Shown here piece by piece: positions 12,101-21,100 of a DNA stretch of 64,000 nt; within the stretch, counting starts at the first letter, position 1; the number at the start of each line of letters is the position of its first letter. Under the pieces are notes generated by a model. That model had not been told where the DNA came from. It was given only the letters and a program-made list of their open reading frames with translations, and did no database searches. This DNA comes from Bugula neritina (lineage: Eukaryota > Animalia > Bryozoa): NCBI GenBank assembly GCA_964035545.1, contig OZ037771.1:569628-633627 (forward strand), in the 5' to 3' direction. The position numbers and the translations under genes are program-made.

Positions 12101-15100
12101 TACATTCCTTCCTCCTGAAAATGAGAGCAGAAACTTATCATCTAGTTGAACAATTTGCAACAGCAAGTCCCTGATCTACTGGAAACAACAGCAAGTCCCT
12201 GATATACTGGAAACAAGAGCAAACTGAGTGATGCCTTCCATTCAATAGTTTATTAAAATCAAAGCTTCTATTAACAATCCTAGTTTATTCTGTTATTGAA
12301 TTTAGAGTTCACAAATCAAGAGTGAATAACTCCTTTACTGACTTCTATGAATAACCAGAGCCTGTATTGACAACATCACCATTTCTATTATTGTAGACAC
12401 GTATGCAGGGAGCGTAGGCAGAGTTGAAATATAACTTGATTACCTGCATCAATAATGCCTTGGGCTAAAATAGCGCCGAACTTTGCCATCACATCTTCGT
12501 GCTTGTCTCCGATGACCTTAGTGTATGTCTCCCTGGTCGACTTGACCTTTGAGTAGAACCACATACGAGTGAGCAGCTCTTACAGGAGAACACAACCACA
12601 CATACTGGGTACAGCTCTTACAGGAGAACACAACTTCTCTGCTAACTCATGTTAGACATTATGTTAATCAACTGTAGCCATTTCTCAATTCAAACTGTCA
12701 AGAAATGTGCTTTGTATAATATCACACAGTCTAGCAAAAAAATTGATAGACTAAGAATCTAATAATAGCTATTTGGAGAGTGGAGGTTACCTGTAATCAC
12801 ACAGTGATAGACTCACCTTAGACGAGGTGTGTTCAGTGTGCTGTATTAGGACAAGAGCCGAGGCTATGAGAGCAGCTTGTCTCACGTAGTTAACGGGGTC
12901 GTTGATGAGTGGCTCCAGCAGCAGCATGGCTTCCTGTAAACAGAACAGCTTCTGTAGAGTATATTCCATACCTGCATATTCTACCTGTATACTCTACCTG
13001 TATATTCTACCTGTATATTCTACCTGTATACTCTACCTGTATACTCTACCTGTATCTCTACCTTTATATTCTACCTGTATACTCTACCTGCATATTCTAT
13101 AGAGAGTAGAGTATATTCTATAGAGAGTAGAGTATATTCTATAGAGAATAGAGTATATTCTGTAGAGAGTAGAGTATATTCTATAGAGAGTAGAGTATAT
13201 TCTATAGAGAATAGAGTATATTCTGTAGAGAGTAGAGTATATTCTACACCATTACAGAGTACACAACAGAGAAGGTAGCATCAGTGTTGCTAGTGCACAT
13301 ACCTTGTGAGCAGTGCCGGCACACGCTATGCCCAGTGCCATGGCAGCGCCGTACCTAACATGGCTGTTGTAGCTCTCCGACAGCAGTGAAACTACGCTCG
13401 GACATTGCTCCGGGTTCCTGAAACACCACATCAAACTTAATCAGGTAAAGACTGACAGGATGTGTCAGCGAGACATCTTTGCATGTGTCAACATGATTAG
13501 ACACCTTTCCAATAATCAACACGAGATGTGTTGATTAAAAAGTGTTAACGATTTACCCACATGACTGTCAATTATATAATATACAAATGTCACAATAGAA
13601 TAGCAACTAGTCCTGGGAAAAATATACATGGAAGAATTAAAACAGCCACAGAAATATTATTCAATGTACAACATATATATAAATTATAAATGATAGCCCA
13701 ACACATGGTCTTTTAATCTCAGCCATACGAAGAAGTGTATACTGTATAGTCCAGCACAAGGCTGTCAGCGTAGAGAGGGTAGGCAAGGCTTCACCTCAGA
13801 TATAAAAGTGCTGTCATAATGCAATAACTTATAATGTTCTTTTCTTAAGCTTCAAGTATGCAAGAGTCAGCGATAAATAATTGATTACTCTGAAATAATA
13901 GTTTAGAATTCAATTAATGAAAGTGCAAGCAGCAGCAGTAGCAGCAGCAGGTGTAAGAGAGAGAGACCTGTAAGACGAAATTACTAGAGGGAGGTTCACT
14001 CGATTCAACAGGTATTTGGTGTCTGAAGTAGATAGCTTTAAAGAAAACAGTTATTTGCAAAGCTTTAGTTTATTGTCGCCTACAATAAATGCTTTTGATT
14101 TCTCTAAGATAAATGCATGGATGCAGCATAATACTTTGAAAACAACCATCGTTTGCAATGGGTTACCATGTGAAGTGAAGATTGTGCAAATATTACTGCT
14201 ACCGTTCACAATATTGTGGTTGGCTTCTTGGAGATATCAATTGATATTTTTTCATTTATTATACCTCAAGCAGGTCAAGCACACATAGAAGGTAGAACAA
14301 AAAGAGAGTTGAAGCTTGGCTAACCAATAATGCTTTAGCTGGTGAACTTTGCCTCAAGGTGTGCTTAGTGCTCAAGTATCATCAGAAGCACCATCGACAA
14401 TCATAAGGGAGCTATTTGTAATGGAATCTAGTATATCCAATACATCTGTGACATTATACAACACTACAAAGATCAATGTCGGGGAAGATAGCCTCACTGC
14501 ATATACTAGGTATATGTTATGTTGGTATATGTTATGTTGGTATATGTTGTGTTGGTATATGTTATGTTGGCATATGTTATGTTGGTATATGTTGTGTTGG
14601 TATATGTTGTGTTGGTATATGTTATGTAGGTATATGTTATGTAGGTATATGTTATGTTGGTGTATGTTATGTTAGTATATGATATGTTGGTATATGTTAT
14701 GTTGGTATATGTTATGTTGGTATATGTTATGTTGGTATATGTTATGTTAGTATATGATATGTTGGTATATGTTATGTTGGTATATGATATGTTGGTATAT
14801 GTTATGTTGGTATATGTTATGTTGGTATATGTTATGTTAGTATATGATATGTTGGTATATGTTATGTTAGTATATGATATGTTGGTATATGTTATGTTGG
14901 TATATGTTATGTTGGTATATGTTATGTTGGTATATGTTATGTTAGTATATGATATGTTGGTATATGTTATGTTGGTATATGATATGTTGGTATATGTTAT
15001 GTAGGTATATGTTATGTTGGTATATGTTATGTTAGTATATGATATGTTGGTATATGTTATGTTAGTATATGTTGTGTTAGTATATGTTGTGTTGGTGTAT

Positions 15101-18100
15101 GTTGTGTTAGTATATGGTGTTAGTGATATGGCCGCGCTGGTGTGAGTTGCAATACCATGATTATATAATGCTACATTTAAAGGGTGCAAGTTATGCTGTT
15201 AAAATTGATTTATTAATGCAATAAAAAGAATACAATACTTGAGAATATTTGTTTCAGATATTGGTACGTTTTACTGCTCATCATCAGCTTGGTGGGAGTA
15301 ACTGGTAACCTACTAGTCATCATAGCAGTCTGCACTGTTCAACGACTGAATACTGCAACTAACGTGGCATTATCCTCTCTTGCTATAGCTGACTTGTTAG
15401 TATCAGCACTTGTAGTGCCTTTTAAAACAGCTCAACACATCACAGGTAAGGGCTTACTTGTATATACTTATAGATCCCATGTTCATTGATTTAGATGGTA
15501 TGGGCTGCTATAAACATATTTAAAATGACTTTTATATATAGTTGTAACTTTGAAGGAATTTTCTTCTGCAAAAAACTCAACACTTCAAAAAGCTATGACT
15601 TAAGTTCAATTTTGAAATATATAATTCACATGATAAGGCACAAAAGACAACCTTTTAAACACATTGCTCACTTGCATACCGATGCTGAAGTGAGATATAT
15701 TTATTCCAGAGACCAAAACATGATAAGTTACAATGTTGAGAGGTTTAGACAAACATTTTTCCTTAGAAGATAGGAGAGGTTAAAGGCTACTTAAATGAAG
15801 AGAAGCTTAACAAGGCTGACTTGCAGCTCATTAAAATACTATTTCACCGAGCTAGTATTTTTTGTTGAAATTACAGGTCATTGGCCAATGGATGAGAAAG
15901 TATGCTTGCTGTTTATATTCTTGGATGTAGGTCTATGCACTGCTAGCATTTGGCAGATGTGCATTATTGCATTCAATAGATGCGTTGGAATATATTTTCC
16001 AATTGAAAACTCTGCAAAATTCAAGTGAGTATTAAATTGGTTTCAATGGTCTTCAGTTGTGAAAAACTGGTTTTATTACTGCATTAAAAAGGAAAAACTG
16101 ATGACTAAAACCTTTAAAACAGACTAACTGATTTCTGGCCACGTCTTCACCATGATTTAAAATTATTTTTTGAAATTTTCAGAACTGCCAAAATGAACAA
16201 GATAAAGATAGGAGCAATGTGGCTGATATCGGTGGCTATAGCAAGTCCAGTGCTGGGAAAAGGCATCAACAACCCAACATTCACTTTTATAGGAGACAGG
16301 TGCACTTTAAATGACCCCAAATTTCAGGTAAGCTAATGCAAGCAGCTGCTTCAGTTCTGAATATTCAAGTCAATAGGTAGGAGGCCGCACAACTGGAGTT
16401 TATCTACTAAGTTAGCAGTGACTCCATAGCGTGCAATAGGAACTGGGACTAAATTTATTTTAAGGAAAAAGTTGATTTGTTTTTAAGAGAAATGTAGGTG
16501 GTATCCCACAGCTGCGTCTATGGAAGATTTTATCCTGCACAGAACTTAGTAGCTAGTTGAGTAGCGCAGAGAAAGTGAAATCAGTATATACATAAAATAT
16601 CACCTAGTGTTATAGCTTGTTCTCTGAAAGCATGTATAATTATGCTAGAATACAATACATTTTCAAATCTTGAGATTTATAAGAAAATTACTTGAACAAT
16701 TTTTTTTCTATTCAAAAATACTATTCCTGCTTGACCACTACATTTGGGATGCTGGTCGTATATTTTTGCTGCAATAAATTATTTGTTCACATAAGTTGCT
16801 ATCAAAGCCTGAACAACGGATATAAACTCTATAACAAAGTCCACCAATGAATAACCAACACTCCTATGCTATCAGCTATATTTACACAGCTGACCATCAT
16901 ATTATACAGTCAAACTGTGCACCCCTCAACAATATTCAAAGTTTCACAAAGTGGGAGATTTTGTTGCCAGTCTTTAAAGTATGCATACATAATACTCTTG
17001 TATTTGGGACAGATATATGGCAGTATGGTGGCTTTCTTTGTACCACTGACTCTCATGATAGTCATTTATGGCCTGACCCAAAGACGCCTAAACAGACAAA
17101 GACACATCTTAGAAAGTGGGTTGAGACGAACAACAGGCGTGCCATCAGCAAACTTTGAAAAGTTTTCTCTCGCTAACAAACCTAAGAACTCAAGAATTAA
17201 CCATAAAAACTCAAGAATTAAGATCGAAACAACACCTCTCGTAGAAATGCACATGCACAAAATGAGTAAACCAAAAACTGGAAACATGAAACATGACAAT
17301 TGTGACCAACGTATGAAGAGAAAAGAAGTCACTGGACATCGGATATCGCAGCAGCCCAGCCCACTCCACAGACAACCAGAATCACAGGCTAACCTTGCAC
17401 AGAAACCTTCCTCCAACAACGAAGCACAAAGAACCCTCAGAAGAACCTTAACCAAAACTCTAAGCCGTACGGGTTCACTAAGAAGTGAGAATACAACTTC
17501 CTACAAAGTGGATAAGGAAAAGAAAGCCTCCCATGTGAGTATGTGTGAGGTCCATATAGCTCAGTTTGAATAAGTGTGAGCTAGTGAAACAGAACTAGTA
17601 CTTCACTGAATGGTGCTCTTTTCAGGTGCTTAGCGTAGTCTTCATGGCCTTTGTCATATCATGGACTCCATTCTTCATCATGAACACTATTGACGCAATA
17701 TGCACACTGCAAGGTCGGCCATGTTTTCTGAGGGCTCACGTGGCAATAGACATAGGAGTATGGCTAGGATATGTGTCCAGTATCATCAACCCAATCATAT
17801 ATACCATCATTAATAAGGACTTCCAAACAGCTTTCAAGTAAGTTTATTCCACAACTGTCTAAATTCTGTAGAGTGGTAGAAACTGCAACCCTTCCACACC
17901 ATATTGAAAGCAACTATACACTAGTTAGGTCTTAGAATTTAAATGAAAGAAAAATTAATATGCAATAATGTCATGTGATGTGACGAATGTCCTTTGCCTT
18001 TAGAAATATACTCCGTTGCCAGTGCTATAAGAACGCCAGGTCAAGAAATCATCCTCCGTTAGTGTATACAAGCAGCATAGAGAATAGAAGACGTAGAGAG

Positions 18101-21100
18101 CAAGTCTCGTCCCAGTCACTCTCCTATACAGTGAATACTACGGGAGGCTCATTGAAGAAAAACTATGATGTGTAGGACAATATGTTCGGGAATTTTCATC
18201 TTGTAGAGTAAACGTATATTTCTATGTAATTAAAACTACTACTTATGTGAAACAATTAATGTTACAACAAGCTGCTCAACCAGTTGAGTGAGCAACTGTG
18301 AGAGGAGAATACAACTTTAGCGGCTGATGATGACAATATCTCTCATAAGCTGACACATTTTAATTTACTAGTTGAGTGAACCGTAAACAGAATTTGAGTG
18401 AAAACTACAGGAAACTCTACAGTTACCCTGTAGTAGATATGAAACCAAATACGGTAAAATTATAACTAGAGAAGAGAGCAGACAAATCTAAGTATAAACA
18501 CAGAGAAACTATATAGCAACTATAAATAATGTTATGTCTTTTGTAGAATATTTTTAAAGAGTAAATGGCCAGTGTATTTTATTTGTGTAAATGTGTATGC
18601 GCATGTGTCAAATAATACTAATCCCTCTAGCACACCAGTTTATCTTTTCTGACTTATAAGAGATTTGGTGATGCAGTTTGAAGACAAGTGATTGGAGTAG
18701 AGTGCAGAACCCTAAGAGTTAGACAGGATGAGGAGAAACTAGGCAGCCATGTTGTGCACAGTAATCAGCGCACGCGGTAACTCACACGGTTTATTCAAAG
18801 TAATGAGTTGTTTACCTGAAGAGGAGGAAGCCAAGGGAAGTAACTGCCGTTCTTCTCACATCATCATTAACATCACTCACCTGAAGACAGACAGACAGAC
18901 CAGCATGCACTGAGTGACACAAAACTAACAGTAATATTGATTCAAGGTAAATTCGACAAGTAAAGATGCATATGTTGATTACAGAGAATGGCGCCACTAT
19001 ATCAACTCAGACAACTCAAAGTTACTTGAATTGTCACTCACTATGTTCTAACAGAACTTCATTAAACCAATCATAAGATATGCAATGCAATGTGATGGTG
19101 AACCACAACTCCAATATCAGTAAGACACACCCATTAGACACTCACAGCTACGTGCAGAAGTCTTCTGATGGCCTGGTTGTTTCCTGTGCCAGCATAGGCC
19201 ATGGCGATAGTGTACATGGCACTCCACCTGAGTATGGGGTCTTTATCTCTCTATACAATATAATATACAGTATAACATATACAGCATATAAAATACACTG
19301 TTAGTATAACATATACAGTATATAATATACAGTATAACATATACAGTATATAATGTAGACACAGACACTAGAGAGTAGAGACATTGTAGTCTGAGAGTTG
19401 GTTACCTGAAGGCTATCAATAAGGGGGTCAGCCTCCTCCTCCCGGCCATACATGGTGAGGGCTATGCCCACAGCTAAACCTCTCAGTATCTTCTCATGTT
19501 GAGATTCCTTGGCGTACTACAAACAGTAATGTGCACAGTGTGTACTGTATACTCTACAGTATAACATGTAGTATATACTGTATACACTACAGCAGAACGT
19601 GTTGTGTAAACTGTATAGGCTACAACAGCACATGTTGTGCGTACAGTATACACTACAGTAAGACATGTAGTGCATGCAGTAAACTCACCGTAACCATGTC
19701 TTCAATGGCGCCAGCACTCTTGGTGCCCAGCATAACCAGTCCCATGGCAATCCCGGCAGCTTCCCCGGCGACAGCGTCATCCAGGTACAGATTGCTCTTG
19801 AGCTGTTCGTAGACGTCTGATCGGGCAGTGCCCATGGCTGCCAGGCCTAAGGCTAGGCATCCCCCATGTCTGTTTTGCTAAATACAAACAGATGACAGGT
19901 TGAAGGAACACAGTCTAAACATCGGCAGAGCAATACAGCATATACGTAGAGTAATACAGCATATACGTAGAGTAATACAGCATATACGTAGAGTAATACA
20001 GCATATACGTAGAGTAATACAGCATATACGTAGAGTAATACAGCATATACGTAGAGTAATACAGCATATACGTAGAGTAATACAGCATATACGTAGAGTA
20101 ATACAGCATATACGTAGAGTAATACAGCATATACGTAGAGTAATACAGCATATACGTAGAGTAATACAGCATATACGTAGAGTAACACAGCATATACCTA
20201 GAGTAATACAGCATATACGTAGAGCAATACAGCATATACGTAGAGTAATACAGCATATATGTAGAGTAATACAGCATATACGTAGAGTAATACAGCATAT
20301 ACCTAGAGTAATACAGCATATACCTAGAGTAATACAGCATATGCGTAGAGTAATACAGCATATACGTAGAGTAATACAGCACAAACCTCATCTGTGGCAT
20401 CTTTCAATTGATTGAGGAGATAGTCTGTGATGTTAGCTCCGTGGTTGGCGTGGATCAGACCGAGGGCGTACAGCCCCCCACCCTCACTGTATGGTGACCC
20501 ACCTGGAAATGAGGTAATAAACTATAGCTTAGAGCACAGCAGCGACGTCCTACACAAGTTCAACAATAGAAAGGGAAATGAGGCTAATAACAAAACATAC
20601 ATCACACATGACATACAGGTTATGTTATGAATAGTGTGCACACTAACCGGTGCTATCCCGGGGCAGGTACTGGGCCATGAGGTTGAGAGAGTCACTCTCG
20701 TGTCCTTTATGTACCACACCAAGTGATGCCGTCGCCGTGAACTTGGCCCAGTTGGTGGACTTGGCCAGCCACTCCAGATTGTCTCTAAATGATAACATAT
20801 TTCACCTGCTTTAATGGAAACACAGTGAGAAAACAGGGCCTTTTTTAGTGGCCTTACAAAGCTGATTATAGAAAGACAATTCCAAAGAGAAGATGATGAT
20901 TGACAGAGAAGGGGAGAAGAGAGTATAACGTACCTGAGGAACTGATCACTGGTTGTACCACAGTGCATGTATGCATTGGCTATCACAGTGGCTGAATGGC
21001 AAATGGAGTTCCTCACTGCATCCTGTAAGGATGTGTTACATAATATAGTACGTGTTATTCCATGTAATATTTCATGTCATCTAATGTTATATATAAAACA

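Follow-up and report, generated by a model that had tools for sequence, protein, structure and literature searches.

In the bryozoan Bugula neritina, a transcribed gene for a 5-HT2-type receptor lies antisense within a single intron of PSMD1, a gene of the 26S proteasome, and the same intron holds htr2b in fishes. The two genes are found in a 64,000-nucleotide stretch of contig OZ037771.1 (positions 569,628 to 633,627), which is called the window here and whose numbering is used throughout unless another locus is named. We consider it very likely that the two genes are an inherited nested pair, in which entrapment within its host would have kept the receptor gene in place. Since the nesting recurs in five further phyla, it probably originated in early bilaterians, dating from the protostome-deuterostome ancestor.

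Structure and transcription of the nested gene

The receptor gene occupies positions 14421-18175 on the plus strand. Its seven exons join into an open frame of 1476 nt that encodes 491 amino acids, with GT-AG boundaries at all six introns, and the whole gene is contained in one PSMD1 intron, antisense to the host. A reading made earlier from the letters of the window alone (the sequence-only reading) had described a complete seven-exon aminergic G protein-coupled receptor (GPCR) antisense in a PSMD1 intron at 13418-18815, about 5.4 kb long and flanked by the protein segments GFLLFR and NPEQC. That description proved exact to the base, the intron measuring 5398 nt, and the splice joints agree with it. 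Seven hydrophobic segments of the receptor align with known 5-HT2 receptors, and Pfam 7tm_1 (PF00001) matches the exons that encode transmembrane segments (TM) 1 and 2, TM3, and TM6 and 7. The 5' untranslated region (UTR) extends upstream at least to 14320, as seen in a contig that covers 14320-14506 and then skips 748 nt, and the 3' UTR reaches at least to ~18290.

The host is identified by its sequence as PSMD1/Rpn2, the 26S proteasome non-ATPase subunit 1. The two exons flanking the intron match human PSMD1 at consecutive residues with E values of 1e-18 and 2e-5. The upstream exon aligns with residues 607-627 and the downstream exon with residues 630-664; since these ranges are separated by no more than the split codon for Arg 628 and by residue 629, the host lacks no exon here. 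The PSMD1 exons beyond this pair are colinear with PSMD1 of Watersipora and bowfin. The orthologous host genes encode the domains RPN2_N, PC_rep, and RPN2_C, and PSMD1 is present in a single copy in the B. neritina genome.

Logan contigs from four runs with the same organism label (X5, X9, X11, and X13) were mapped onto positions 13300-18900. Contigs of X9, X11, and X13, which represent three studies, contain the receptor joints 15445/15877, 16024/16183, 16327/17013, 17534/17626, and 17837/18004 (a slash marks an exon boundary here and below). The 748-nt skip mentioned above corresponds to receptor intron 1, so that splicing is seen at six of the six receptor introns. The PSMD1 joint 13417/18816 was recovered from contigs of all four runs. 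This agreement of splice joints is far beyond chance expectation. The receptor gene is real and transcribed, and the two genes, on opposite strands, are each spliced independently. Runs labeled as symbiont metagenomes also contain host sequence.

The contigs diverge from the window by ~3-8%, which points to another haplotype or a sibling lineage as their source and suggests either deep polymorphism or a cryptic sibling species. Other haplotypes carry in-frame 3-nt insertions at 17314 in exon 5, and every insertion or deletion seen in the third intracellular loop has a length divisible by three. The 14 coding differences listed between haplotypes comprise 7 silent and 7 protein-changing ones, the latter mostly in loops; in so small a sample, these differences are a weak sign of constraint.

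Receptor identity

Searches of single exons against the PDB gave best scores for the TM6-7 exon with 5-HT2A, 5-HT2B, and 5-HT2C, barely above D4 and 5-HT1B, while the top scores for the TM1-2 exon were with beta-2 and TAAR9. An exhaustive protein search with the TM6-7 exon returned no identical protein, the best match having 59-62% identity over 70 amino acids. The best relatives in full-length BLAST searches were Saccoglossus "5-HT2B-like" and Haliotis "5-HT2C-like" proteins, a Watersipora protein, a millipede protein, and insect 5-HT2 receptors. The Watersipora relative is a bryozoan protein that bears the NCBI name "D2-like" and scores 192 bits with 5-HT2A and 183 bits with D2.

Because per-exon PDB scores do not tell 5-HT2 apart from the rest of the amine receptors, 48 rows were placed in a maximum-likelihood tree under LG+C20+F+G4. 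Forty rows, including vertebrate 5-HT2A and 5-HT2B and the invertebrate 5-HT2 receptors, form a 5-HT2 clade with a support of 100/100 and a long stem. The B. neritina and Watersipora receptors are sisters (100/99) and fall inside a protostome group (93/91). A tree that joins these two receptors to the D2-like rows is worse by 36.6 log-likelihood units, and the approximately unbiased (AU) test rejects it (p = 0.018).

When the receptor is aligned with zebrafish htr2b and with orthologues from four invertebrates, the residues of the binding pocket are present: Asp3.32, G-S-x-x-A-F-F-x-P in TM5, W-x-P-F-F-x-x-N in TM6, and W-x-G-Y in TM7, under a residue numbering that we assume. The segments GSxVAFFxPL in TM5, WxPFFxxN in TM6, and WLGY...NPIIY agree with the aligned 5-HT2 rows.

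Five orthologues were mapped exactly to their loci and aligned with the B. neritina protein. A phase-1 intron just after TM2 (ITG/HW, in the first extracellular loop) falls in the same alignment column in B. neritina, Haliotis, Saccoglossus, and Capitella. The intron after TM2 lies one column off in zebrafish htr2b, also in phase 1, and one column off in the Watersipora annotation, in phase 2. Four further receptor introns are common to B. neritina and Watersipora only; with the near-identical PSMD1 exons described below, they fit a source that is a bryozoan or closely related to one. The Watersipora receptor model ends in TTC AGG TAA (L002:17290-17310), where B. neritina has the exon 6 donor TTC AA/gtaagt; the model probably reads into the intron and misses the last exon, of which there are weak hints ~1.2 kb downstream.

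On its sequence, we assign the guest to the 5-HT2 family of class A aminergic GPCRs. The sequence-only reading had called it 5-HT2-like, and the fully supported clade, the rejection of the D2-like union, and the common phase-1 intron bear this out: the receptor does not fall outside the 5-HT2 clade.

Elsewhere in the genome, the aminergic genes recovered are 5-HT1-like or of another type. Six aminergic-type receptor genes (L006 and L009-L013) are intron-less, against six introns in the nested gene. Of these, L006 (C2:15572000-15576500) is clearly 5-HT1A-like, and L010, a "D2-like" outgroup in the tree, is ambiguous by PDB (202 bits with D2 and 197 bits with 5-HT1B). Two more multi-exon paralogues are not 5-HT2-like. 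No second 5-HT2-type gene was found in the 216-Mb genome as far as this search reached.

The host intron across species

Five upstream PSMD1 exons of Watersipora are colinear with those of B. neritina, and the PSMD1 exons are 95-100% identical. The last upstream exon (L002:20946-20884), with 100% identity in protein, ends in TTC AG/gttagt and lies 3.6 kb from the 3' end of the receptor; on the other side of the Watersipora receptor, no host exon was found within 10 kb. The last host exon before htr2b in bowfin ends in ...GFIMF, with the boundary TTC AG/gtacgg. The first psmd1 exon after htr2b in zebrafish starts ctgcag/G ACT CCA GAA, encoding R/TPEQC; this exon (L004:5079-4960) is 87.5% identical to B. 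neritina 13303-13417 and shares its AAG/gtgagc end. Intron position and phase therefore agree wherever they are readable, on the 5' side in Watersipora and bowfin and on the 3' side in zebrafish.

Gene tables place the receptor wholly inside PSMD1, on the opposite strand, in the hemichordates Saccoglossus and Ptychodera, the bryozoan Watersipora, the mollusc Haliotis, the nemertean Tubulanus, and the starfish Asterias (an echinoderm), and they place htr2b likewise in the vertebrates zebrafish and bowfin. With B. neritina counted, nesting was recorded in nine species from seven phylum-level lineages, and in each of them the guest lies antisense to its host. The sequence-only reading had taken as established that vertebrate HTR2B is antisense in a PSMD1 intron, and from this it had proposed an ancient bilaterian arrangement. 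The vertebrate nesting is seen here in both fishes, and the host intron of B. neritina is homologous to theirs in position and phase, its exons flanking human R628; among vertebrates, this comparison covered the introns of the two fishes. Nested orthologues in six more invertebrates (the mollusc, the nemertean, both hemichordates, the starfish, and Watersipora) strengthen the proposed antiquity.

In Tribolium the two genes are not nested but are convergent neighbors, with 8 kb between the 3' end of the receptor gene and that of PSMD1 beyond it. Two genes for 352-aa Phage_integrase (tyrosine recombinase) proteins lie in opposite orientation within one intron of this receptor gene (L015:37405-40227) and are probably part of a Crypton- or DIRS-like mobile element. 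The nesting would have been lost in the sampled arthropods and apparently also in Capitella.

Coordinates and repeats at the locus

The features of the gene pair are collected in Table 1.

Table 1. Receptor gene, flanking host exons, and repeat array in the B. neritina window
Feature	Position	Strand	Description
PSMD1 exon 3' of host intron	13303-13417	minus	Starts cag/G AAC CCG GAG CAA TGT, encoding R/NPEQC
PSMD1 host intron	13418-18815	minus	5398 nt, phase 2; splits Arg codon AG/G, equivalent to human R628
Receptor exon 1	14421-14509	plus	Contains the start codon; N-terminal tail carries N-glycosylation-type NxS/T sites
Minisatellite	14510-15115	plus	~40 copies of a 15-nt GTATATGTTATGTTG-like unit; takes up most of receptor intron 1
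Receptor exon 2	15258-15445	plus	TM1-TM2; 7tm_1, E 5.8e-10; 3' end at phase-1 intron
Receptor exon 3	15877-16024	plus	TM3; aminergic Asp in FLDVG; NRC at DRY position; 7tm_1, E 1e-6
Receptor exon 4	16183-16327	plus	TM4 and extracellular loop 2
Receptor exon 5	17013-17534	plus	TM5 and long basic third intracellular loop
Receptor exon 6	17626-17837	plus	TM6 SWTPFFIMN, TM7 NPIIY; 7tm_1, E 4e-11
Receptor exon 7	18004-18175	plus	Helix 8; C-terminal tail to NYDV; stop codon
PSMD1 exon 5' of host intron	18816-18880	minus	3' end ...VTSLGFLLF, then AG/gtaaac; contigs end or join at 18880

The first unit of the minisatellite, whose repeats also form open reading frames, provides the donor GT of receptor intron 1. 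Because the array starts exactly at this donor, a GT donor-like site is present in nearly every unit; the spliced contigs use the donor of the first unit alone. More long minisatellites occur in PSMD1 introns at 19853-20415 and 12900-13250, with long repeat open reading frames on both strands, and tandem repeats seem to be unusually common in introns at the PSMD1 locus.

Origin and retention of the nesting

The arrangement in B. neritina is very likely inherited rather than newly formed, fish htr2b lying in the same intron, which is of phase 2 and interrupts the codon equivalent to human R628. Splicing of the host removes the entire receptor gene along with the intron. Since PSMD1 is essential and single copy, a breakpoint that freed the guest would destroy the host, and the two genes could separate only through a clean loss of the host intron or through relocation of the guest. 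The convergent neighbors in Tribolium look like such an escape, theirs being the state expected after intron loss on the host side.

Several points weigh against this account, and most of them bear on one or another of its alternatives. In Saccoglossus, Ptychodera, Asterias, Haliotis, and Tubulanus, tblastn with the B. neritina PSMD1 exons found none within 10 kb of the receptor, so that the exact intron is unreadable in these five nested invertebrates, and we assume that it is the same one. Nesting is also absent from several lineages: within 10 kb of the receptor, a PSMD1 gene or exon was found neither in Capitella nor in a millipede nor at one Limulus copy. Both points would suit convergence, with aminergic receptor genes inserted into PSMD1 introns on separate occasions in different lineages and a likeness to HTR2B/PSMD1 that is coincidental. 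We regard such convergence as extremely improbable, because independent entries would have had to produce the antisense orientation in every nested species and an identical intron position and phase at all readable boundaries (B. neritina, Watersipora, zebrafish, and bowfin). Furthermore, the guests form one well-supported clade that branches broadly as the animal phylogeny does, and Tribolium still has both genes adjacent. As for the receptor itself, the bryozoan sequences are long branches that may belong inside the 5-HT2 clade or at its base, and the AU test does not reject a tree in which the remaining 38 rows of 5-HT2 group to their exclusion (p = 0.37). The outgroup sample is limited to two automatically named proteins and the six B. 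neritina paralogues that lack introns. Together with per-exon PDB scores that hardly separate families and the nearness of the D2 and 5-HT2A scores of the Watersipora protein, the long branches and this AU result could be read as signs of a divergent aminergic receptor from another family, for example a D2-like one, that has only its position in common with the vertebrate gene. This is very unlikely given the full support of the branch that joins the bryozoan pair to 5-HT2, the rejected union with D2-like rows, the common phase-1 intron after TM2, and the TM5 and TM6 patterns, which fit the 5-HT2 rows; moreover, the PSMD1 synteny itself marks htr2b in zebrafish and bowfin.

Other points concern function, expression, and the cause of retention. 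The DRY motif of the B. neritina receptor reads N-R-C (15967-15984, residues ~123-128), with Asp3.49 replaced by Asn, Tyr3.51 replaced by Cys, and the Arg kept; Watersipora has D-R-C at this position, and the other aligned orthologues have DRY or ERY. The D/E-R-Y sequence at the end of TM3 is a general feature of class A receptors rather than one specific to 5-HT2, so it bears on function and not on membership, and with NRC in its place, signaling and G-protein activation may be atypical. Serotonin as the ligand would follow from membership in the family, as would coupling to Gq, which is probable. A receptor that is decaying or changed, either as a transcribed relic or with altered or constitutive signaling instead of that of a normal serotonin receptor, would be compatible with this motif, with the long branch, and with the fact that 7 of the 14 listed coding differences alter the protein. 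We nevertheless hold it to be improbable, since the frame is intact over seven exons with canonical splice sites throughout, splicing was seen in three studies, the haplotype indels in the third loop keep to multiples of three, the binding-pocket residues and NPxxY are retained, and the differences that alter the protein are concentrated in loops. The label "RNA" on the runs is an automated guess; the contigs are spliced, which argues for an RNA origin and makes a DNA source hardly possible. Finally, we infer entrapment as the most likely reason for retention. Between the two bryozoan host introns, no conserved non-coding DNA was found and only coding exons are in common (a weak test at such divergence), so regulatory linkage is unsupported here. 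A more far-reaching proposal would make the pair one of very few nested arrangements kept in the same intron since the protostome-deuterostome ancestor, with HTR2B as the paralogue at the ancestral locus, and in its stronger form would have the pair kept by selection and not by entrapment, either because a ubiquitous proteasome gene and a neuronal receptor gene influence each other by antisense transcription or because they have regulatory DNA in common. We view that proposal as rather doubtful.

Comparison with known nested pairs

The pair in B. neritina resembles vertebrate HTR2B/PSMD1 in guest family, host, antisense orientation, and, for fishes, the position and phase of the host intron. 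The two differ in that zebrafish htr2b has three coding exons, compared with seven in B. neritina, and that the host intron of fishes must exceed ~25 kb, compared with 5.4 kb. The location of mammalian HTR2B inside PSMD1 is common annotation; one single nucleotide polymorphism, for example, is assigned to both genes.

The synapsin-TIMP pair is an antisense guest in a host intron that is found from cnidarians to humans and has been lost in nematodes (Pohar et al. 1999; PMC2825198). The pair described here is similar in its antisense intronic guest, its retention from invertebrates to vertebrates, and its lineage-specific loss, in this case in the sampled arthropods. The hosts differ, PSMD1 being a ubiquitous and essential housekeeping gene and synapsin a neuronal one. 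The outcome of the vertebrate genome duplications also differs: three SYN-TIMP pairs survive (PMC2825198), compared with the one nested paralogue (2B) seen here.

Like the pairs in surveys of metazoan microsynteny, PSMD1 and the receptor are linked across phyla and are without sequence relationship to each other. Among five surveyed genomes, no more than three overlapping gene pairs proved common to Ecdysozoa and vertebrates, all of them nested and antiparallel (Solda et al. 2008, PMC2330155). The main texts of that survey and of Irimia et al. 2012 (PMC3514665) make no mention of PSMD1 or HTR2. A survey based on fly and worm would miss the PSMD1/5-HT2 pair because the sampled arthropods have lost the nesting. 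The literature found on PSMD1 together with HTR2B included no evolutionary paper and none concerned with synteny or nested genes, with microsynteny supplements covered only in part. We found no paper on the conservation of PSMD1/5-HT2 nesting beyond vertebrates; its kind, an ancient nested pair, is known from cases such as synapsin-TIMP.

Implications

The position within PSMD1 is a landmark by which 5-HT2 receptors of invertebrates can be matched with their vertebrate orthologues; these receptors are hard to place by sequence alone, and their automatic names vary among 5-HT2A, 2B, 2C, D2, alpha-adrenergic, and octopamine. The position implies that HTR2B would have kept the ancestral genomic site through the vertebrate genome duplications; HTR2A and HTR2C are not known to be nested in PSMD1. 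The pair is a well-defined addition to the short list of nested genes found across Bilateria. Because PSMD1 is both essential and ubiquitous and exists in a single copy, the pair would provide a clean system for distinguishing nested genes that are kept by selection from those that are unable to leave, with the neighboring genes of Tribolium as a natural "escape" for comparison.

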